Shown: positions 2 through 32,732 of the stretch, piece by piece
Layout: the number at the start of each line of letters is the position of its first letter
Numbering within the stretch: position 1 is the stretch's first letter
Sequence record: NC_048054.1
Direction: 5' to 3' (one strand)
DNA length: 64,000 nt
Made by a program: the position numbers and the translations under genes
The notes under the pieces: model-generated
Database searches by the model: none
What the model saw: the letters and a program-made list of their open reading frames with translations, nothing else
Told to the model about the DNA's origin: nothing

Positions 2-907
2 GGTGCGTGGAAAGTAGATGACGCTCCGTTCCCGATCGAACTGAACGCTGGTGGCCATGCGTATATCGGTAGCGCCGAGCACCGTCAGTTCACCTTCATG
101 TACGACACGACTGCTGATGGTATGGCGGTGCTGCGCCCTGAGTGGAACACACTCAACCAGCTTGCTCAATACCCAGAGCAGAAAGGCCAGTACGCAGGTC
201 TGCGCGTACCGCCTGTGAAAGAACTGAAAGCGAACGTGCCTGACGCGTTTGATGAAGCAAGCCAGCTCGTTCGTAACCTGCTCGGTAACGCTGACTTCAA
301 GAGCGTACAATTGCCTCTGGCCGTTGCTGGCGATACCACGTTTGCTGCGAACGTACTGACTACCGATATGATTGGTGATCAGGACGATGTTCACACGTTC
401 TCTCTGTGGGCACGTCACCTGCTGTCTATCGGTATCTATGCTTACGCAGACGAAAGCGGCCTGCATATTCCAGGTCTGAACTACCACGAGCTGGAAGCGG
501 CTGTAGCGCAAGACGAACTCGGTGCGTTTGCTGGTATCAGCTTCGAGGCCACCAGCCGTCAACGTCAGACTCAGATGCTGACTGTGATCGCTGATGTGTT
601 CCCTGAACTGACCCGCTATGTGCTGGACTATCAGTTGCAGACTGGTCAGGATAAAATCTATCTGGCGCCAGAGCAGGACTTCGCACAGGCTCTCGACCTG
701 ATTCTGCATAAGCAGATTGAAGGCTACGATGACCAGTACGATCTGCTGATGCAGCAACTGGCGTACATCGACGACTGGTACAACTTCGATAACTCTATCG
801 TTCCTGTTCCGTTCACGCTGAAAGCTCTGGTCAATCCTGTGGAGTTCTGGGATGTGAACGTCGAAGAAACGTCTGTTGTGATCACTAACGGTTTCGTTAG
901 TCACAAC
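2..907 (+). mobile_element. Intein (blocks B, F, G visible) with degenerate LAGLIDADG-like region
   Basis: Block B-like YIGSAEHRQF (His codon 80-82); blocks F/G PVEFWDVNVEETSVVITNGFVSHN followed by Ser+1 (908-910); weak block C/E/H-like segments LLGNAD, FAANVLTTD, WARHLLSIGI. Confidence 0.8.
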
Positions 908-1441
908 TCTGACGTTCGTGTTCGTCTGGCTTCTCGTGCTGTGCCTCAGGGCTGGCCGACAATGAAAGACGCACCAGGTATCGTTGGTGAGAAGTCTGTA
1001 ACTGTTGAAGGTGGTACTGACCGCTATCGTTTCATTGCAGCCAAGACCATCAAGAACAAGATGGGTGGCATCCCGAACCAGCAGACTTGGTTACGTCTGT
1101 GGGAAGCTGACGGCAACGGTGAAGCGCGCGGCTTCGACCCAGTGTTCGATACATGGCATTACCTGAAAACTCTCGGCCTGATCAATGGTACTCGTAAGAG
1201 CTTCAAGATCAAAGCGCCGTGCCCGCTTGCATCTGATGTTAAGATGGATTGGGATGACTTCCGTACTCTTATCAACGGCAGCAAAGAACAAGTTGTCGGT
1301 GTGTGTAAGAAACTGAAAGTCAAACCTGCTGGCCTGCGTCTGTGGTGCTTCAAGTTCGTGCAGTCTGCAAAAGGCAACGAGATGTTGAAGAACGCTATCA
1401 GTAAGTCTGCGAAGACTTCTGATGACGATGACGACGAGTAA
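2..1441 (+). CDS. recA: RecA/UvsX-like recombinase, 3' part, interrupted by an intein (5'-truncated by the window edge)
   Basis: Frame is open from base 2, upstream of the track's ATG at 98. After the intein end (HN, 902-907) the C-extein SDVRVRL...KTIKNKMGG...GFDPVFDTWHYLKTLGLINGTRKSFKI aligns by eye with RecA ASVRLD...KVVKNK...[25 protein letters not shown] and ends in an acidic tail (DDDDDE). Walker motifs lie outside the window. Confidence 0.65.
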   Translation, partial: GAWKVDDAPFPIELNAGGHAYIGSAEHRQFTFMYDTTADGMAVLRPEWNTLNQLAQYPEQKGQYAGLRVPPVKELKANVPDAFDEASQLVRNLLGNADFKSVQLPLAVAGDTTFAANVLTTDMIGDQDDVHTFSLWARHLLSIGIYAYADESGLHIPGLNYHELEAAVAQDELGAFAGISFEATSRQRQTQMLTVIADVFPELTRYVLDYQLQTGQDKIYLAPEQDFAQALDLILHKQIEGYDDQYDLLMQQLAYIDDWYNFDNSIVPVPFTLKALVNPVEFWDVNVEETSVVITNGFVSHNSDVRVRLASRAVPQGWPTMKDAPGIVGEKSVTVEGGTDRYRFIAAKTIKNKMGGIPNQQTWLRLWEADGNGEARGFDPVFDTWHYLKTLGLINGTRKSFKIKAPCPLASDVKMDWDDFRTLINGSKEQVVGVCKKLKVKPAGLRLWCFKFVQSAKGNEMLKNAISKSAKTSDDDDDE

Positions 1442-2009: not shown

Positions 2010-2711
2010 ATGAAAAAGATTCAAACTAACATCTTACCAACCGAAGCTCTGCATGGTCTTATTCACGGCTACGCGCGTCAGGCTAAACAACCAGACGCTG
2101 CAAGCAAGACGTTGTTCTACATTGACGTCACTGAGCGTGGTGCTAACGATGCACTGTACTCCATCCTTCGCCGTGATATTCCTTCAAACATCGTCGGTAC
2201 TGCGTATGATTCTATTGTTAGTTTCCGTGGCCATACAGCGCCGCCACAACTTCCTATCGTACTGTCCGAAAGTTTATTCCACATAAGTTTAGAGAGACTC
2301 GCCAGTTCGCTGGCAGGCATCTTTGATGCGCTCGGTCGTACAGTACATACTAACGACACTCAAATCACTATCTACGGCGAACCAGCAATCGAGAAACTTC
2401 TGGCGATTGTTCGAGACACTCAGTTTAAGAACTTCTTGGAAGTGTGCAATCCTGAGCTTGCCTGCGGTGATTTCGATCTACAGTCCAACATCACTGTGGA
2501 CAACTTTGTGTCTATGGCAATCGACCCTGATTTTGAAAAGCGTATTCCAGAGAGCCCTGGTACCACATACGCGTTTGGCCGAGACTTCATGTTCATGCAC
2601 TATGAAGACCTGCACAAAGTCATTCAACTGTTGCGCAAATATAAAAAGAATTGTACGCTGCATCCAGACTTAATGCGCTACTACTTCATGAACGTAATCT
2701 GTAAATATTGA
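2010..2711 (+). CDS. hypothetical protein, probable paralogue of 3859..4626
   Basis: AGGAG RBS; C-terminal KYKKNCTLHPDLMRYYFMNVI resembles KFKKNHRIIFHEDFRRLFFEEYI of the 3859 ORF. Confidence 0.8.
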   Translation: MKKIQTNILPTEALHGLIHGYARQAKQPDAASKTLFYIDVTERGANDALYSILRRDIPSNIVGTAYDSIVSFRGHTAPPQLPIVLSESLFHISLERLASSLAGIFDALGRTVHTNDTQITIYGEPAIEKLLAIVRDTQFKNFLEVCNPELACGDFDLQSNITVDNFVSMAIDPDFEKRIPESPGTTYAFGRDFMFMHYEDLHKVIQLLRKYKKNCTLHPDLMRYYFMNVICKY

Positions 2712-2759
2712 TCACCAACCGAACACAAATGCTGTGTGTAGTCTAGCCCGATTTGGGCA

Positions 2760-2792
2760 GGGGAGAGCCGGATGGCCTCCCCATTTTTTTTT
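2760..2792 (+). terminator. Rho-independent terminator
   Basis: GGGGAG(A)GCC-GGAT-GGCCTCCCC then A plus nine T. Confidence 0.8.
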
Positions 2793-2815
2793 GTCTACGC
2801 CAGCAGGAGAATCGC

Positions 2816-3814
2816 ATGTCTAAATCAAAATCAACGCCACAGACCTTCCTCGATCTATTCCTAAAGGACGTTAGAAAGTTTTTGCCTATGTTCGACAAAG
2901 GCTTAGATGCACACTTCTTAAAGTGCAAGGGAAAGCCAGGTACTTCTGGTGTCTCATTACATCAATACCTGAAGTGGTTAAGTCCTATCGCTAAACCGCC
3001 AGAGAATGCAAGCAAACTCTCTATAGTTATCTCTGGCTACCTGCATTACTTCTGGCAGTTGTCTAAACCTAACTTCGTGTTTGAGCCTGTGCTCATGAAT
3101 CACATGGCAGACTCAGATCTGCCTGAGAAAATACCTGCCGAAATTCTGCAACGCTTACCGTACTGGTGTCAGTGGATAACATTGCCTATACATCTGGCGA
3201 GCGCTGCACAGACGATGCAGTTAGACTTTGATGGTGCGTTTGTTGGTTACACCGAAATCGACAGGCGGCCTGCGCTGATTCTTGTCGCGCCCTTTGTTGC
3301 CTCTGACGAAAGCATCAAGACAAACGGCTTCACACCTTCGGTGACGTCATATGTTTACCTTGACGAGCCTGTTGACCACCTATCATTCATGAAGAATAGT
3401 CATTTGCTGAATGTCAGTGACCGAATGCCTGACAGATTCTTTCAGGAGTTGATGTTCAGCGTATACCACTACGTGACCAAGATTGTTAATTGTGTCATGT
3501 ATATCTGCTCGCAGCAACAAGCACTGTATCAAGAAGGTCATTCTCAGCCTAAGCCGCAGCGTTTAGGTAAGAGCTATCGCATCACGCCACCGAAAGATGA
3601 TCGCATTATCACGGTCGGCGCCGAGATGACCAAGATTCTCAAAGACTTCGAAGCAGAAGTCGAAGCGTGTACTCGCGCTTTCAATGGGCGTAAGCCGCAT
3701 ATACGGAAAGCGCATTACCACCACTTCTGGACAGGACCGAAAGTAGGAGTTCGTGTTCTTGTCTGTAAGTGGTTGCCACCAAGTATTGTTCGCGGCACTA
3801 TCGTAGAACAATAA
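2816..3814 (+). CDS. AcrVA2/FinQ-family protein
   Basis: Start revised to ATG 2816 (AGGAGA RBS). Motifs DLPEKIPAEILQRLPYWCQWI, NCVMYICSQ and RKPHIRKAHYHHFWTG...CKWLPPSIV match the remembered AcrVA2 motifs LPDDTPTSIFLNLPDWCVYV, YLLWLCVAE and RPHIRRGHWHGYW...RWQPAVFV. Confidence 0.7.
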   Translation: MSKSKSTPQTFLDLFLKDVRKFLPMFDKGLDAHFLKCKGKPGTSGVSLHQYLKWLSPIAKPPENASKLSIVISGYLHYFWQLSKPNFVFEPVLMNHMADSDLPEKIPAEILQRLPYWCQWITLPIHLASAAQTMQLDFDGAFVGYTEIDRRPALILVAPFVASDESIKTNGFTPSVTSYVYLDEPVDHLSFMKNSHLLNVSDRMPDRFFQELMFSVYHYVTKIVNCVMYICSQQQALYQEGHSQPKPQRLGKSYRITPPKDDRIITVGAEMTKILKDFEAEVEACTRAFNGRKPHIRKAHYHHFWTGPKVGVRVLVCKWLPPSIVRGTIVEQ

Positions 3815-3858
3815 CTTTATCTCAACTCCATGTATGGGCGTTATGCCCGGAGGCTATT

Positions 3859-4626
3859 ATGAAATCTCGTGTACAACATGCGTATATCCCTGATATGGGA
3901 TCGTTTGACCCTTACGTCCGCTCTCTGTGCCATATGGCGCGAGCACTGGAAAACAATGGCCTGAACTATGGCAAGTCAAAGCCTGTCGTAATCATCGGCA
4001 CTTCGAAACGCGTAGTTGAAGCCTACGTTAAGCAGTTGCTCAACACAAACAATCTACCGAACACCCTTATTTGCTTTGGCGTAGACGAGCCGCCTGTCAG
4101 CCATCGTGATTATACTTACGCTGGTGCCCATGTTGTGCTGATGCACGACCTGACGTATGTTTGCAGCGACACAATGAACAAGGTTGCCACACGCGTTCTC
4201 GAAATCATCGACAGCCTCAAACAGAAAGAAGGTGACACTGACCTCAAAAACAGTGAGCTGTCTTTGGTGTACTCGAACCCGCATTTGTGGTCTGCTATTC
4301 TTGACTACGGCGCCGCTTCTTTTATGAACATGGCTGGACGCAACATTGAATACCGAAGCGGTTTGGTTTCATCTATCGGCCTCGACGCGTTAATGAAGTG
4401 CGAAAGCAACCAAGAGTACCATGAGCTTCGTGCCGAAACTATTACGATCGGCCTGGAGTTCTTCTGTGTGCGTACGGACTACCTACTGTCTAAGGTACAT
4501 AACTTGCTGTGGTCGCTCGCGTGTGATGACTGCAAGTTCAAAAAGAATCATCGCATCATCTTCCATGAAGACTTCCGTCGCCTATTCTTTGAAGAATACA
4601 TCCTCAGGGACTTCAAGGGCTTTTAA
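3859..4626 (+). CDS. hypothetical protein, probable paralogue of 2010..2711
   Basis: Start revised to ATG 3859 (GGAGG RBS); C-terminal similarity to the 2010 ORF. Confidence 0.8.
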   Translation: MKSRVQHAYIPDMGSFDPYVRSLCHMARALENNGLNYGKSKPVVIIGTSKRVVEAYVKQLLNTNNLPNTLICFGVDEPPVSHRDYTYAGAHVVLMHDLTYVCSDTMNKVATRVLEIIDSLKQKEGDTDLKNSELSLVYSNPHLWSAILDYGAASFMNMAGRNIEYRSGLVSSIGLDALMKCESNQEYHELRAETITIGLEFFCVRTDYLLSKVHNLLWSLACDDCKFKKNHRIIFHEDFRRLFFEEYILRDFKGF

Positions 4627-4700
4627 GAATATTCTTAGCCTGCTCTCTAATTTCTATATGTTGGCAAGTAGTGCTGACGTAGAGTTATTGGAGAAATAAC

Positions 4701-4961
4701 ATGTGCGGTCGTAGCCTTATCAGGTTGAAGTACAACGCACGGTCCTCGAACTGGTGCAATAATAAAGTAAACGCTTGTAGTAAGCGGAAGGCGACCAACG
4801 TACAATGCGAAGATTTTCTGGCAGCAACGAAAAACTGCCGCAGTGTGCAAGAGTCGTCCAGTGTTGTTTCTTTCTTTGATGGTCAAGAGCTGGTTGGTCA
4901 GGCTGTATGGCATGAGATAGAAGGCGACAATACACTTCAATTCCGGTTGCTACTTGCTTAA
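4701..4961 (+). CDS. hypothetical Cys-containing protein (86 aa)
   Basis: GGAGA RBS; ends just before a terminator. Confidence 0.6.
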   Translation: MCGRSLIRLKYNARSSNWCNNKVNACSKRKATNVQCEDFLAATKNCRSVQESSSVVSFFDGQELVGQAVWHEIEGDNTLQFRLLLA

Positions 4962-4965
4962 CGAT

Positions 4966-5003
4966 AAAAGGGCTTTCAGATATTCTCTGATGGCCCTTTT
5001 CTT
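4966..5003. terminator. Rho-independent terminator, possibly bidirectional
   Basis: AAAAGGGC...GCCCTTTT inverted repeat with A-tract and T-tract flanks. Confidence 0.75.
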
Positions 5004-5059
5004 ATTCTAACGCTAATTTTGACCTGTCAATACACACAAACCGAACTCGGGGTACTCAC

Positions 5060-6598
5060 ATGTCTTTGATTAAAATCGAAGGCGTTGCATCCACATCTGC
5101 TCCAACCAAAGCGCAGAAAGATGCCGCCGTATATCTGTTTGGCTCTAAGGGTCATTCAATTGTCGCAGTGCTCGACAAATTCAGTCGCGCCAAAGAACTG
5201 CGTACTGCTCACCTTGACGGTCTGCTCAAGCTGATGAAAGAAGGCGAAGATGATGATATCATCAAATTCGGCGCATCTGCTTTGGGCAAGAAAACCATCC
5301 AGAACGCCAAAGCGTTTGCTGTTGCGAAAACTCTGGCTGCCTCTATCAAGGCGCTGAAACTGATTCGCGTTCCGATGAAGTGGATCGATGGTCACTCCGA
5401 TGTGGCTGCTGCTCGCGCACAGGAAACCAAAGAGATTCGCGCACGTCGTACTGCGGGCAACAAACCTGAGAAGCCGATCAAGCTCGACAACCCAGGCGCA
5501 CCTGAATCAAGTACGGTAGACAGCAAAGGCACAAAAGAACCTTCCGCTAAAGAAGCGAAAGCATTCGCTGAAAGCCTGACTAAATCTCTGGGTATGGACT
5601 TCAAGGTAGTTCGCGGTGACGCTATGGCGGAAGATCCGCTGCGCTACGAAGCAACAAATCCCGATGACCTGTCGGCCGTAGCCAGTTTTAGTATTACGCC
5701 TCCGTTCGACGGCCTCCCAGCAGATATGAAATCTAGCGACAAACCTAAGTGGCGAATCGCAATGACGTATCGTGACGGCAAAGTTCGTATTGCAGTTCTC
5801 GGCACTACGTTCAATGCTGCGGCCGCCAAACGTGTCATCACTAAAGAGAATCAGGCGCGTGTTAAGGGTGCAACTAAAACCACGAAAGGCAAAACACCGG
5901 CACAGCTTGCTTCGCTTGTTGAGACTAAGACTGCTGCATCCCTGAGCAAGTTAGGTACCATTGATAAAAATGCCTTCCTCTCAGGTTTTGCTGAAACAGT
6001 AGGCAAGAAGCTGGGCAAAGGATATGTCGTTGGTGTAAGTGGCACTGGTCTTATTTTGCGTCTTGATGACGGCAATCGCGGTCCTCGTGTTTGGTTGAAT
6101 CTGACCGATGGTGGCTGGACCTTTACTTCTGTTGAAGGTGGTGCAGGTGACAAACAGGAAGAGTCTTTTGGCAGTAAATTCAAGATCGCTGATCTTGTCA
6201 AACGCACCAAAGCATGGCTCAAGTCTCCGAAGTTGAAGGCCGCAGCTCCTGCCAAAGAAGCATACACACCGTCAGGCAAATCTGATGTGACGCTGGTGGA
6301 TGAACTGGCAGAAGTGACTGCACGTAAGATCGCTGCGAAGCCATTACAAGCGCGTGAGGAATATTTCAATGCGCTGCGTAATACTCTGCATTCTAACCTG
6401 CGTAACTCTGTGGTCAACACAACGTCCGACGGTGTTACCGTTGCGCTTGGCAGCAAGCTGTATACGATCCGCCTGTCAGATAACGCGTGGACTATTCAGA
6501 CCGGCGCTACTGGCAAGCAGAAGAAAATCGGTGCAACGTTCGATATCGTTGACCTGCTGGGTATGATGGACAAGAGCATTCTGCGTCCTATAGCATAA
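5060..6598 (+). CDS. hypothetical Ala/Lys-rich protein with three similar C-terminal domains; possibly virion-associated
   Basis: Standalone gene between two terminators; three segments end in W-x(n)-G-x-x-F (LGTTFN, FGSKFK, IGATFD). Virion location is a guess. Confidence 0.8.
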   Translation: MSLIKIEGVASTSAPTKAQKDAAVYLFGSKGHSIVAVLDKFSRAKELRTAHLDGLLKLMKEGEDDDIIKFGASALGKKTIQNAKAFAVAKTLAASIKALKLIRVPMKWIDGHSDVAAARAQETKEIRARRTAGNKPEKPIKLDNPGAPESSTVDSKGTKEPSAKEAKAFAESLTKSLGMDFKVVRGDAMAEDPLRYEATNPDDLSAVASFSITPPFDGLPADMKSSDKPKWRIAMTYRDGKVRIAVLGTTFNAAAAKRVITKENQARVKGATKTTKGKTPAQLASLVETKTAASLSKLGTIDKNAFLSGFAETVGKKLGKGYVVGVSGTGLILRLDDGNRGPRVWLNLTDGGWTFTSVEGGAGDKQEESFGSKFKIADLVKRTKAWLKSPKLKAAAPAKEAYTPSGKSDVTLVDELAEVTARKIAAKPLQAREEYFNALRNTLHSNLRNSVVNTTSDGVTVALGSKLYTIRLSDNAWTIQTGATGKQKKIGATFDIVDLLGMMDKSILRPIA

Positions 6599-29830: not shown

Positions 29831-30385
29831 ATGAAAAGCTACGGTTACTTCTTCATTCTGAATCACATCGCTATGGCCGTAGATGCACCCGACAAGGACG
29901 TCGGGTTTAAAGCTCTGGTTGAACTGGATATGCTCAATCGCGCATCTATCTTTACGCGCCCTGACGCCGAGCCTCGCGCTGCAAAACTTGTACGCGATTT
30001 AACTCAGGCTATCTATCCACCTGCATCCGATATCCATCCGACTGTTGCGCAGCGTATGATGTTGGTGAAAGCGCTGCACGACGAAGAACTCGAATCTATC
30101 GTCGGCGGTATTCGATTCTTCGTGCCGTTTGCGTACACGAAAGAACAACTGACCGAGCAGTTCGGTTTCTTTGATAGTGGTGAGGCTCTTAACGTGCCCT
30201 ACTATCTGCGACACATGCTCATGGACGATCAAGCCGTCTTCCTTGACGGTAAGCTGACCAGCTTCGCGCATTCGTGTGCATATGGAGAAGTGACGCAGAC
30301 AGCCAGAACCTACGGTCTGCTTCCTGCTCAGGCTTATGGCAAGAACGATATCCCTGAGCAATTCAAACATCTGCCTCTGTTTTAG
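29831..30385 (+). CDS. hypothetical protein
   Basis: 184-aa ORF, AAGGA RBS. Confidence 0.8.
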   Translation: MKSYGYFFILNHIAMAVDAPDKDVGFKALVELDMLNRASIFTRPDAEPRAAKLVRDLTQAIYPPASDIHPTVAQRMMLVKALHDEELESIVGGIRFFVPFAYTKEQLTEQFGFFDSGEALNVPYYLRHMLMDDQAVFLDGKLTSFAHSCAYGEVTQTARTYGLLPAQAYGKNDIPEQFKHLPLF

Positions 30386-30397
30386 GAGACAACGCTC

Positions 30398-30856
30398 ATG
30401 GGAGTTGTTAAAGGCATAACCGCTACCACGTTCCCTTCTCGGGGACGTGACGAGGGCCAGAAGATTGCTCTCAAGACTCGCTGGGGAATTTATCCAGCGG
30501 TCATTGTGCGACAAGATAACGACCAGCCGTACAATGAGATATGGAAGATCGATGCAAAGAATCTTCCTCGTCGTTATTTCACCGAGAACGACGACCTGTT
30601 CGTGTCACGTCACTACATTGAGAACTACGCAAAGCATTCACCTATCTGTCCGAAGGGTGAGCATGAAGACCAGTTCGTTGATGTTGTGTTTGACTACGAC
30701 ACACAAAATAAATGCGAAGGCGTCGTTGTGACGCATCGTGATCTGCTTTTGGTAATTCTGATTACCACAGGCCCACATTCAGGTCGCTACGTTACTGGCA
30801 AAGAATGTCAGTATGCACCACGACCTCGCTCCACCAAAGAACTTATCGACAACTAA
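30398..30856 (+). CDS. hypothetical phage protein with a tandemly duplicated beta-rich domain
   Basis: FPSRGRDEGQKI...AVIVRQD...RHYI and CPKGEHEDQFV...GVVV...GRYVTGKECQY look like two copies of one domain. Confidence 0.75.
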   Translation: MGVVKGITATTFPSRGRDEGQKIALKTRWGIYPAVIVRQDNDQPYNEIWKIDAKNLPRRYFTENDDLFVSRHYIENYAKHSPICPKGEHEDQFVDVVFDYDTQNKCEGVVVTHRDLLLVILITTGPHSGRYVTGKECQYAPRPRSTKELIDN

Positions 30857-30866
30857 GGATATAAGA

Positions 30867-31436
30867 ATGCAATTCAAAGTAATGCCAGACCTCGAACGTT
30901 TCCCTGACTTCATTATGCCTAAACGTGCTACTGCACATTCGGCTGGGTTTGACCTGTTTGCACAGGAAGATATGATCATCACCGAGCAAACAACTTTGTT
31001 TGAGTTGGGCTTTAAAGCAGCCGTACCTCGCGACTTTACTGGCGCTAACGATCAGGTTCCGAAAGAGTATGTAGGGATCATCTTCCCACGAAGTGGCCTG
31101 GGTGCTAAGTTCAACTGTCAATTGTCAAACACGCTCGGTGTTATTGATTGTGACTACCGTGGACAATGGATGGCCGCTATGCACCTAGGCGGTAAAGGCA
31201 CTAAGAGTGGTGCGCTCGAAAAAGTACGCGCACTTCTTCAACGTGTTGCACCTTCTGTTGCCGCTCTGGTCACGGGGCCTGATACGCAACTCGCGCTTCA
31301 CATCAAGCGTGGCGAAGCATTTGCACAAGTGCTGTTCTTCGAAGTACCTCTGATGGACATTGCGCAAGTCACCGAGCTGGACGACACTGAACGCGGTGAG
31401 GGTGGTTTCGGTTCCACCACACCTGCTCGTGGATAA
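30867..31436 (+). CDS. dut: trimeric dUTPase with insertion
   Basis: Motifs I AGFDL, II RSGLG, III GVIDCDYRG, IV GEAFAQ, V RGEGGFGST. Start revised to ATG 30867. Confidence 0.95.
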   Translation: MQFKVMPDLERFPDFIMPKRATAHSAGFDLFAQEDMIITEQTTLFELGFKAAVPRDFTGANDQVPKEYVGIIFPRSGLGAKFNCQLSNTLGVIDCDYRGQWMAAMHLGGKGTKSGALEKVRALLQRVAPSVAALVTGPDTQLALHIKRGEAFAQVLFFEVPLMDIAQVTELDDTERGEGGFGSTTPARG

Positions 31437-31446
31437 TCTGCTGATA

Positions 31447-31644
31447 GTGATTATCGCCTACTATATTGTGGGCGTTATCATATTCATTCGCGATCTATGC
31501 GAAGTCGCAGAAGACACGGTGCTCCGCAAACAGTTCAATGCGGAACTCGAACAGATCTCTAACACAGGTCTTGCGATTGAACTTATCCGTGTTGTGCTAT
31601 TCGTTGTGTTTATCCACATTCCTTGCTGGATATTCCGCGTATAG
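31447..31644 (+). CDS. small membrane protein
   Basis: Two hydrophobic segments; start uncertain. Confidence 0.5.
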   Translation: MIIAYYIVGVIIFIRDLCEVAEDTVLRKQFNAELEQISNTGLAIELIRVVLFVVFIHIPCWIFRV

Positions 31645-31702
31645 TGACGCTACTCACACGAGGAGCCTTACGTGGGTTCCTCATTATCGTAATATAAACA
31701 CT

Positions 31703-32017
31703 ATGGCAAAGAAAACTTATCTGCTACCTCGTGAGCGCCCAAGCCCGTTGCCTAATCTACGAGCCTATCTCGCGTTTCTCGCCCGGAAGCCTAATGCTAA
31801 TCGCGCAGTATTAGAATCGTATTGCAAAGCAAGTCTGGCACAAATGGCGCGCGGCCGTTTCTTTGTAGGTAAGCTCTTTGGCTACAAGGTGTATACGAAA
31901 TCGAACAAGCTCGCATACACGGTTGTGTGGATTGACCCATACAACTACGATTGTCTTGTTCTAAACCATCAAAGGAGAGAAGTAGAGTTTAAAAACCTTT
32001 ATGGCCTGCTTTTATAG
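31703..32017 (+). CDS. hypothetical basic protein
   Basis: ATG 31703 chosen; the track's upstream extension overlaps the previous gene. Confidence 0.6.
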   Translation: MAKKTYLLPRERPSPLPNLRAYLAFLARKPNANRAVLESYCKASLAQMARGRFFVGKLFGYKVYTKSNKLAYTVVWIDPYNYDCLVLNHQRREVEFKNLYGLLL

Positions 32018-32054
32018 TTAGGTCCTAGCGCCTTCACACTAGGGGAATCTTCCG

Positions 32055-32732
32055 ATGATAACTGTTCTTAACAATCGTACCGACGAGGTAATTAAACGCC
32101 TGAACGTAGCAGTATGGGTATGTGTCGCAATCATGTTTGCTGTCTTCATCGCAATCGTGAGTAACGCAAACGCCAGTATGTCTACAGGCCCTGACAACGC
32201 CATTGATCTTTCATCTTCCGTGTCACTCGATCCCTCCAATCGTGTGGCAACCAAATACAAGGAGATAGAAAAGGCAGTAGCCGCAAAAGAAGAACGAAGG
32301 CCCAAACGTTATGTAACGAGAGAGCGCCTCCGACAACTCTATGCGCACTTGCCGCATCCGTCTGACTTAGGCAAGCAGATTGATTTGGCCGCAGAGAAGT
32401 ACAACGTAGATGCAAAATTGCTTCTATCGATCTGCGTGTCCGAGTCGCATCTTCGTGCAAAGGTCAGGAACAAGTCCGGAGCTACAGGCCTGTGTCAAAT
32501 CATGCCTAAAATGCACGGACGTTCTGTACGGGAACTCATGGACTACCGAATCAATGTTGATCAGGCAGCCCAGATTGTTGCGTTACTAAACAAGCAGTGT
32601 AGAGGCAGACGCGCCTGCGTCATCCAAAGTTACAACACTGGTTGGGGAGCATATTTGAGAGGGGTACGTGCCCCACAATATTTAGCGAAAGTACAGACTG
32701 AGTATCGCCGCAAGCATACTCCATCTTCCTAA
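32055..32732 (+). CDS. soluble lytic transglycosylase (SLT family) with N-terminal TM helix
   Basis: AAEKYNVDAKLLLSICVSES (catalytic Glu), SGATGLCQIMP, NVDQAAQIV, SYNTG; TM segment VAVWVCVAIMFAVFIAIVSNANA. Confidence 0.9.
   Translation: MITVLNNRTDEVIKRLNVAVWVCVAIMFAVFIAIVSNANASMSTGPDNAIDLSSSVSLDPSNRVATKYKEIEKAVAAKEERRPKRYVTRERLRQLYAHLPHPSDLGKQIDLAAEKYNVDAKLLLSICVSESHLRAKVRNKSGATGLCQIMPKMHGRSVRELMDYRINVDQAAQIVALLNKQCRGRRACVIQSYNTGWGAYLRGVRAPQYLAKVQTEYRRKHTPSS

Follow-up and report, generated by a model that had tools for sequence, protein, structure and literature searches.

The 64,000-nucleotide stretch of DNA analysed here (hereafter the window) corresponds to positions 197659-261658 of the 261,658-bp genome of Dickeya phage vB_DsoM_AD1 (MH460463 / NC_048054; AD1 below), a jumbo myovirus of Dickeya solani, and it opens inside the gene for a RecA/UvsX-like recombinase. 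According to both sequence comparison and structural modelling, this recombinase gene carries a genuine class-1 intein that had not previously been annotated. We propose, with a probability of roughly 0.85, that this intein occupies a RecA insertion site of its own and is fixed in the clade of AD1, that its nuclease has probably been lost, and that it contains a cassette which is at once constrained and exchanged.

An open frame runs from window base 2 to a stop codon at 1439-1441, as had been noted in a first-pass annotation made from the letters of the window alone. When the whole genome is considered, the same frame remains open upstream to an ATG at genome position 196574 and encodes the 841-amino-acid (aa) precursor of Table 1, labelled 'putative RecA protein' in GenBank and nothing more. 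The N-extein (residues 1-320) contains Walker A-like (GGEQSCKST) and Walker B-like (MVIVDS) motifs, matches Pfam RecA (PF00154, E 2.9e-23) and aligns to residues 140-218 of E. coli RecA. The TIGR02012 model also matches the recombinase (8e-23), with a score below its equivalog cut-off, in keeping with a phage clade that is divergent, and PHROG 97 ('UvsX-like recombinase') gives a single alignment over residues 28-833 of the precursor (E 1.9e-76) in which the insert is skipped. Taken alone, the C-terminal 177 aa have no match to the Pfam RecA models; PHROG 97 nevertheless identifies them as the RecA half that the first reading had taken them for. The insert itself comprises 344 aa (residues 321-664; genome 197534-198565, window -124 to 907): the N-extein ends in VMFGSPEYEPGGDALKFY, directly followed by block A (CFDRDTQIRTDHG), and the insert ends in VSHN, after which the C-extein begins with SDVRVRL. 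The 447-aa open reading frame (ORF) found at 98-1441 arises artificially from the edge of the window and an internal ATG, and is a fragment made of intein and C-extein. The P-loop of this phage RecA clade (N-extein residues 90-98; genome 196841-196867, window -817 to -791) reads GGEQSCKST, versus GPESSGKTT in cellular RecA; across 12 aligned phage recombinases, G96, E98, Q99, S100, K102 and T104 of the Walker A loop are invariant and Cys101 is nearly so, a cysteine within the P-loop being unusual for RecA.

The boundaries of the insert are set by comparison with orthologues that lack it. In the same 12-sequence alignment, the intein-free proteins of Dickeya phage JA29, of NCTB and of Pseudomonas phages PaBG and Lu11 show an uninterrupted LKFY-SDVR, JA29 being a phage of the same host whose exteins are ~72% identical to those of AD1. 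In eight of the 12, among them AD1, Alexandra, Y3, pEa_SNUABM_7, Yoloswag, fHe-Yen9-02 and Afa-NA1, a block of 328-347 aa with C...HN ends lies exactly between this Tyr and this Ser. Among 22 copies of the intein, with identities down to 25%, the invariant residues are C1, F2, S66, H69, D326, T337, S342, H343 and N344, which are almost exactly the residues of splicing. All 43 database relatives are RecA proteins with C1 and HN/SDVR (a slash marks a splice junction), and a phmmer search with the AD1 intein against 1.84 billion proteins returned four 50%-identity representatives, all of the same RecA family and with the same terminal residues, and no distant sequence relatives. No meaningful match was obtained when the profile of the intein alignment was searched against PDB sequences. 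The motifs named in the first-pass annotation lie in the window at 71-82 (SAEH, intein aa 66-69), 278-295 (LLGNAD), 353-370 (VLTTDM), 842-868 (EFWDVNVEE) and 899-907 (SHN).

The AlphaFold2 model of the intein, built from the 22 sequences, has a mean predicted local distance difference test score (pLDDT) of 92.2 and a predicted template modelling score (pTM) of 0.90. In VIA-align comparisons, more than 30 solved inteins, among them NpuDnaB, Ssp DnaB, Mtu RecA, gp41-1, VidaL and other mini-inteins, match its two beta-rich lobes (Z 16-17.5, root-mean-square deviation 1.7-2.4 Å over 123-132 residues). The M. tuberculosis RecA intein (RecA-a, PI-MtuI), from the same host protein family, thereby shares the Hint fold of the AD1 intein (Z ~17 against the splicing-domain structures 2IMZ, 2IN0 and 3IFJ) with a sequence identity of only ~15%. 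The exteins are under strong purifying selection (omega, the ratio of non-synonymous (dN) to synonymous (dS) divergence, is 0.01-0.12) and the insert splits a beta-strand of the ATPase core just after the equivalents of K216/F217/Y218; a functional recombinase therefore needs its excision, and we infer that the AD1 precursor undergoes protein splicing. The proposal of an intein in a phage recA/uvsX-like gene, which had been drawn from the HN/S junction and from blocks B, F and G, all of them read correctly, is thus borne out by boundaries, invariant splice residues and Hint-fold model; the upstream sequence also supplies the RecA N-terminal half and ALKFY followed by block A. The coordinates of the features are given in Table 1.

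Table 1. Features of the recombinase gene of phage AD1 and of its intein (window positions unless stated otherwise; negative positions lie upstream of the window)
Feature	Position	Strand	Evidence or remark
Full RecA/UvsX-like recombinase precursor gene	genome 196574-199099 = window -1084 to 1441	+	841 aa
3' part of the recombinase precursor gene	2..1441	+	upstream frame extension; PHROG 97; Pfam RecA
Intein residues 1-42, including Cys1 and block A	-124 to 1	+	upstream of window
N-terminal Hint lobe, intein residues 43-97	2..166	+	Cys1/Ser66/His69 invariant in 22 relatives; mini-intein superposition
Block B, GSAEHRQ	68-88	+	N-terminal Hint lobe
LAGLIDADG-like alpha-beta-beta-alpha-beta-beta module, intein aa 122-222, the hypervariable, exchangeable cassette	239..541	+	models, structural matches
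Helical bundle, intein aa 223-306, at the expected place of a second LAGLIDADG half-domain	542..793	+	model
C-terminal splicing lobe, blocks F and G, ending in EFWDVNVEETSVVITNGFVSHN	794..907	+	Asp326, Thr337, Ser342, His343, Asn344 invariant
+1 Ser codon, predicted C-extein nucleophile	908..910	+	Ser invariant in 12/12 aligned recombinases, intein-free ones included
C-extein (177 aa) and stop	908..1441	+	PHROG 97 E 1.1e-18; colinear with C-terminal halves of JA29, NCTB, PaBG and Lu11

The Tyr that precedes the AD1 insert corresponds to E. coli Y218 and M. tuberculosis residue 219 when the N-extein is aligned to solved RecA structures. The first-pass annotation had equated this position with the mycobacterial RecA-b site and had taken it as known that RecA-b inteins follow ALKFY, and on both points it was mistaken. 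In actinobacterial and other cellular RecAs, a LAGLIDADG intein of ~350-365 aa is found at VMFG/SPETTTGG, after about residue 205 (counted back from the Tyr, VMFG/S is G205/S206 in mycobacterial numbering), and ALKFYAS is unbroken. Of the 158 proteins retrieved with the second intein of Erwinia phage pEa_SNUABM_17 and Yersinia phage fHe-Yen9-02 as query, the best 120 all carry Pfam RecA; the 53 proteins among the matches listed whose junctions could be parsed automatically are mostly ~700-aa cellular RecAs with the intein at VM[FY]G/C...VHN near residue 205, and in such cellular RecAs ALKFY is directly followed by ASVR or SSVR. Five Actinomycetota metagenome-assembled genomes have the same VMFG/S arrangement with a contiguous ALKFYAS; at one of these loci (L024), a 365-aa intein is flanked by EKIGVMFG/CLSYNTRVTLAD on its N side and by VVHN/ on its C side. 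In AD1, VMFGSPEYEPGGDALKFY is uninterrupted and only then comes /C, 14 residues downstream of the VMFG/S site, and hhalign gives a probability of 0.9% for a relationship between the AD1 intein family and the VMFG-site family. Judged from these alignments, the AD1 insertion site is an allele of its own and not RecA-b; we did not find it named in the literature searched. It also differs from RecA-a, whose junction we take to be K251/C252 (M. tuberculosis numbering), ~32 residues downstream of the AD1 site, and whose +1 residue is Cys instead of Ser.

The VMFG-site family (LAGLIDADG_2, PF03161) has in common with the AD1 intein that its members are class-1 RecA inteins with a +1 Ser; it differs by a junction located at the start of loop L2 and by being recognised by Pfam. 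It comprises at least 158 members, mostly inteins of cellular RecAs, and is also represented in relatives of AD1 (pEa_SNUABM_17, fHe-Yen9-02 and P0045), AD1 itself being without one. In the first two of these phages, the additional intein (~350 aa, CLHG...IVHN/SPEYEP, inserted at VMFG/SPEYEP) has clear LAGLIDADG motifs and a Pfam Intein_splicing match, and its occurrence is sporadic among near-identical phage exteins (JA29 vs P0045, P0042 vs P0051, and pEa_SNUABM_17). Both inteins, 14 residues apart, are thus found within one recombinase gene in pEa_SNUABM_17 (L003:1381-4956, precursor of 1191 aa) and in fHe-Yen9-02 (L004:1426-4929, precursor of 1167 aa), so that two independent sites for inteins lie within a single short segment, VMFG...ALKFY, of one protein of a phage.

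The metagenomic protein P0047 contains both inteins; with its ALKFY-site intein (469 aa) as query, about 15 more phage-type RecAs with inteins of 447-474 aa at ALKF[YF]/SD.R were identified. These inteins (P0047, P0160-P0167 and P0175-P0178) are inserted at the same point of the same host protein family as that of AD1 and have in common with it the residues Cys1, HN and Ser+1, and their N-terminal splicing lobe is related to the AD1 one with an hhalign probability of 95% (E 2e-8); the C-terminal blocks are close as well (TIVTNGIVSHN vs VVITNGFVSHN in AD1). They differ in that all carry Pfam LAGLIDADG_3 (PF14528) with two canonical LAGLIDADG motifs and occur sporadically, whereas the AD1-type inteins measure 317-354 aa and are fixed in their clade. 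In a tree of the exteins, from which the inteins had been excised in silico, a single clade with a support of 100/100 comprises all AD1-type inteins. Within this clade, whose base is a polytomy, only the JA29/P0045 lineage has an empty site; the history of the clade therefore involves either one gain and one precise loss, or JA29 branching first. Outside the clade, endonuclease-intact inteins are scattered, being present or absent in near-identical exteins (P0047 vs P0048, NCTB vs P0163, Lu11 vs P0167), which fits active homing. Considered as a whole, this distribution is the pattern expected from a homing cycle, inteins with an intact endonuclease actively invading and the AD1 clade having fixed its intein along with an altered endonuclease. 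One metagenomic protein, P0191 (743 aa), has a mini-intein of 241 aa (aa 327-567) at the same ALKFF/SDVR site, with exteins nearly identical to those of P0160, whose intein (459 aa) has an intact endonuclease; this looks like a recent endonuclease deletion, in contrast to the AD1 clade, where the middle domain was never lost. The ALKFY site displays all stages of the cycle, namely empty, endonuclease-intact and sporadic, mini-intein, and fixed with a remodelled endonuclease.

Between its Hint lobes, the AD1 intein contains a middle domain of two parts. In the model, the cassette consists of a helix (122-138, ending in LLGNAD), a hairpin (142-163), a helix (172-183) and a hairpin (190-199), and the order of the elements over aa 122-218 is, as modelled, that of one LAGLIDADG half-domain; the following helices (203-209, 223-238, 243-256, 270-277 and 285-304) lead into and form the bundle, in which Q229, R230, P243, L245, Q294, A296 and Y297 are invariant or nearly so. 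When the whole intein was compared with solved structures, residues 124-218 superposed on residues 5-94 of I-CreI, I-Vdi141I, I-MsoI and I-CvuI with Z 4.6-5.4. When the middle domain modelled alone (pLDDT 88.9) was compared with 48,161 chains, WhiA (8DY9 chain I) came first with a weak match (Z 6.9 over 79 residues), followed for the same segment, with Z 3.7-4.9, by I-DmoI, the PI-PkoII endonuclease domain, E-DreI, I-Vdi141I, I-CreI, I-CvuI, I-Tsp061I, the WhiA N-domain and I-MsoI. WhiA is a degenerate, DNA-binding LAGLIDADG scaffold without catalysis, as the AD1 module may be too; it differs from this module in being an independent transcription factor that has two half-domains plus a helix-turn-helix, and shows no sequence similarity to it. 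The helical bundle matched generic helical proteins only, and Foldseek found nothing significant for the middle domain (probability 0.2-0.44), its list consisting mostly of LAGLIDADG enzymes. For the whole intein model, Foldseek matches at E<=1e-3 were limited to three inteins with endonucleases, TliVMA, PI-PkoII and PI-SceI (E 2.8e-7 to 7.7e-4), in which a domain is nested between the Hint lobes at the canonical position as in AD1; these have complete endonucleases of two half-domains, in contrast to the single half-domain-like module and helical bundle of AD1.

Signatures of an active nuclease are missing from this domain. Across cassette types, the LAGLIDADG-like helix has no conserved acidic residue at its end and none is invariant in aa 98-306, D286, D289 and D300 of the helical bundle being nearly so; the model has no second LAGLIDADG half-domain. 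The LAGLIDADG profiles PF00961, PF03161 and PF14528 match neither the AD1 intein nor its 22 relatives nor anything else in the AD1 genome, Pfam and PDB sequence searches with the middle domain returned nothing, and homology to the intact endonuclease of the sister ALKFY-site inteins was not detectable. No free-standing endonuclease is recognisable in the ORFs flanking recA. Because there is no conserved acid, no profile match and no homology to the sister endonuclease, the nuclease activity of the AD1 intein has likely been lost, as far as sequence and model can indicate. The first-pass annotation had described an eroded endonuclease with two degenerate LAGLIDADG-like blocks: LLGNAD is indeed at the place of a LAGLIDADG motif, whereas VLTTDM is in a beta-strand of the model instead of a second helix and is not such a motif; similarly, the absence of a recognisable active LAGLIDADG enzyme holds, and decay is not borne out by the substitution pattern described below. 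Its further suggestion, that splicing might make the recombinase conditional, is wholly speculative.

Indeed, purifying selection acts on the middle domain, which is not decaying neutrally. Its omega (Nei-Gojobori) is 0.04-0.38; for the cassette (aa 123-222) the values are 0.07-0.10 within a type and 0.20-0.35 between types, and for the helical bundle 0.05-0.21. At the same time, intein and extein histories disagree. The exteins of P0019 are 100% identical to those of AD1 with an intein only 81% identical, those of P0028 are 98% identical with an intein at 69%, and P0036 combines AD1-like exteins (93%) with a Yoloswag-type intein (51% to Yoloswag vs 32% to AD1). At the DNA level, the contig of P0019 is 99-100% identical to AD1 over 3 kb upstream, 96-100% in the exteins and 92-94% in the Hint lobe, falls to 47-67% at genome 197900-198200 (window ~242-542) with 27 nt of gaps, and rises again symmetrically past the cassette, which gives a gradient centred on the intein (100, 97, 92, 57, 90, 95, 99% identity). 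A second contig repeats this dip, which pEa_SNUABM_33 and pEa_SNUABM_3 do not show. Between AD1 and the P0019 contig, dS reaches 1.63 in the cassette versus 0.16 in the exteins, a depth about 10 times greater, and one cassette type was found in three extein backgrounds. Taken together, these comparisons portray the LAGLIDADG-like module as a set of old, diverged and folded alleles moved between co-circulating phages, probably by homologous recombination through the conserved flanks. The higher dS of the whole intein was dropped as a proof of lateral transfer, neighbouring genes spanning dS 0.6-2.0 and dS tracking dN; the convincing contrast is that of the cassette alone, in a contig 99-100% identical upstream.

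Comparable mosaic blocks are present in neighbouring genes, and the exchange of the cassette may therefore be ordinary phage mosaicism. In a metagenomic phage otherwise 99-100% identical to AD1, blocks at 52-82% DNA identity were found at window ~2042-2342 (ORF 2010-2711) and ~1542-1741 (ORF 1491-1910), and another at genome 192950-193099. They are hot spots of mosaic replacement in small ORFs flanking recA; Pfam gave nothing on ORFs 1491-1910 and 2010-2711.

We suggest the following course of events. The 841-aa precursor would be translated with the intein interrupting the ATPase core between the Tyr of GGxALKFY and the invariant Ser. The Hint domain would then excise itself by means of Cys1, His69, Asp326 and His343-Asn344, with Ser+1 as second nucleophile, and the exteins would be ligated into a recombinase of 497 aa. 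The intein belongs to a family found at this one site in phage-type RecAs, the distant members of which keep an intact LAGLIDADG_3 homing endonuclease, and is fixed in the group formed by AD1, Alexandra, Y3, Yoloswag, fHe-Yen9-02 and Afa-NA1. In this clade, the endonuclease position is held by a LAGLIDADG-like half-domain and a helical bundle which are most likely no longer a nuclease; purifying selection maintains this middle domain, and its half-domain is traded between co-circulating phages as a deeply diverged cassette.

Several observations weigh against this proposal. The match to the intein C-terminal hidden Markov model (HMM) TIGR01443 scores 14.5 bits, below the cut-off of 15.6; Pfam Intein_splicing (PF14890) is absent from AD1 and found in 3 of its 22 relatives (best E 6.6e-4). 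Searches with the insert alone in Pfam, NCBIfam and PHROGs yielded no usable family, only noise (CUE, PilN) and the sub-threshold C-terminal match. These scores reflect the low sensitivity of the profiles, not a defining biochemical feature. Block B has Ser66 in place of the usual Thr (S-A-E-H). The Z scores of the module (4-7) are below the level that the tool itself regards as reliable, and the module is therefore called LAGLIDADG-like and not LAGLIDADG. The AD1, Alexandra and Y3 types retain Asp140 where the LLGNAD helix ends (the remaining cassette types have G, V, A, S or another residue), and some endonuclease activity could persist through it in a homodimer. Finally, we take the label RecA-b to designate the M. 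leprae intein of residues 206-570 with a +1 Ser, and what the present data establish is a 365-aa intein at VMFG/S in actinobacterial RecAs.

Among the other explanations, the one that survives best, although we consider it unlikely, is that the middle domain is a working module with a selected function of its own, either sequence-specific DNA binding or protein binding in the manner of WhiA or a recognition subunit for a nuclease acting in trans, of which the specificity surface diversifies and is traded. The low omega within cassette types, the tenfold synonymous depth of the alleles relative to their flanks and the recurrence of the same type in three extein backgrounds would all agree with this, as would the best structural match being a non-catalytic LAGLIDADG protein; furthermore, the AD1 clade was never reduced to a mini-intein, although P0191 shows that such a deletion occurs in the sister group. 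Purifying selection could, however, equally mean that a folded spacer is needed for the docking of the Hint lobes, and the blocks of similar depth in neighbouring genes make general mosaicism possible. A more speculative extension, for which the odds seem to us slightly poorer still, is that the LAGLIDADG-derived module of a fixed intein has, instead of decaying, been re-used as a folded, selected and hypervariable recognition cassette, which might bind DNA as WhiA does or confer specificity on a nuclease acting in trans, its diversity being itself selected, for instance for the allele-specific exclusion or targeting of a rival recA; if so, the intein would be a domesticated weapon or marker in the competition between co-infecting jumbo phages.

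An active homing endonuclease of unusual form, such as a single LAGLIDADG half-domain working as an I-CreI-like homodimer, is very improbable. The identity gradient centred on the intein does resemble co-conversion tracts and in the AD1 cassette type the C-terminal end of this LAGLIDADG-like helix has an acid, Asp140, but an acid at this position is not conserved across cassette types, the models have no second half-domain and the LAGLIDADG profiles match nowhere in the AD1 genome. Empty target sites are, moreover, few because the intein is fixed in the clade, and the replacement of one intein by another is possible without cleavage.

Even less probable is the reading closest to the first-pass annotation, that of a mycobacterial RecA-b allele at the same insertion point whose endonuclease has decayed to a splicing-only remnant. 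The host protein family, the +1 Ser and the LAGLIDADG-like helix LLGNAD are compatible with it; they are outweighed by the RecA-b-type junction at VMFG/S in the 53 parsed RecAs and the five actinobacterial genomes, by the two phages that carry both inteins, by the hhalign probability between the two families and by a middle-domain omega (0.07-0.35) that reveals no neutral decay. Least credible of all is a Hint-like domain that is permanently retained and never excised, for which the curated intein HMMs below threshold could be invoked, and against which stand the interrupted core strand, the strongly constrained exteins and the invariance of all splice-active residues in an insert whose other positions diverge down to 25% identity.

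The profiles being under threshold, this intein was never annotated. In more than 50 jumbo-phage genomes the gene is labelled 'putative RecA', 'UvsX-like recombinase' or 'hypothetical protein' and no intein is mentioned; for each relative with a single intein, RecA is all that the precomputed Pfam annotation lists. We found no mention of an intein in this gene in the AD1 genome paper, the PaBG paper, reviews on jumbo phages, the Erwinia jumbo-phage paper, 'Fractured genes' or intein surveys. As the intein is unannotated and unseen by Pfam, the protein lengths, alignments and phylogenies based on this marker gene are distorted. A former endonuclease half-domain which is hypervariable between phages and constrained within a type is uncommon and bears on the fate of endonucleases after the fixation of an intein. 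AD1, with the intein, and JA29, without it, both infect Dickeya solani MK10, which makes homing, splicing dependence and the role of the cassette testable by co-infection.

In a metagenomic contig related to AD1, the gene at the counterpart of window 2816-3814 (L018:5739-6812) carries the precomputed Pfam PF26125 (AcrVA2-like). The AD1 genome also contains two further inteins below Pfam threshold, at ~2483-5311 and ~29986-32115 (L019 and L020). One is located in the P-loop of the terminase large subunit (...GQR/C...HHN/SGKS...), and the other interrupts a C5-cytosine DNA methyltransferase right at its catalytic Pro-Cys motif (DLLDGSPP/C...VVHN/CKGFS), so that its +1 Cys would be the catalytic cysteine of the enzyme.

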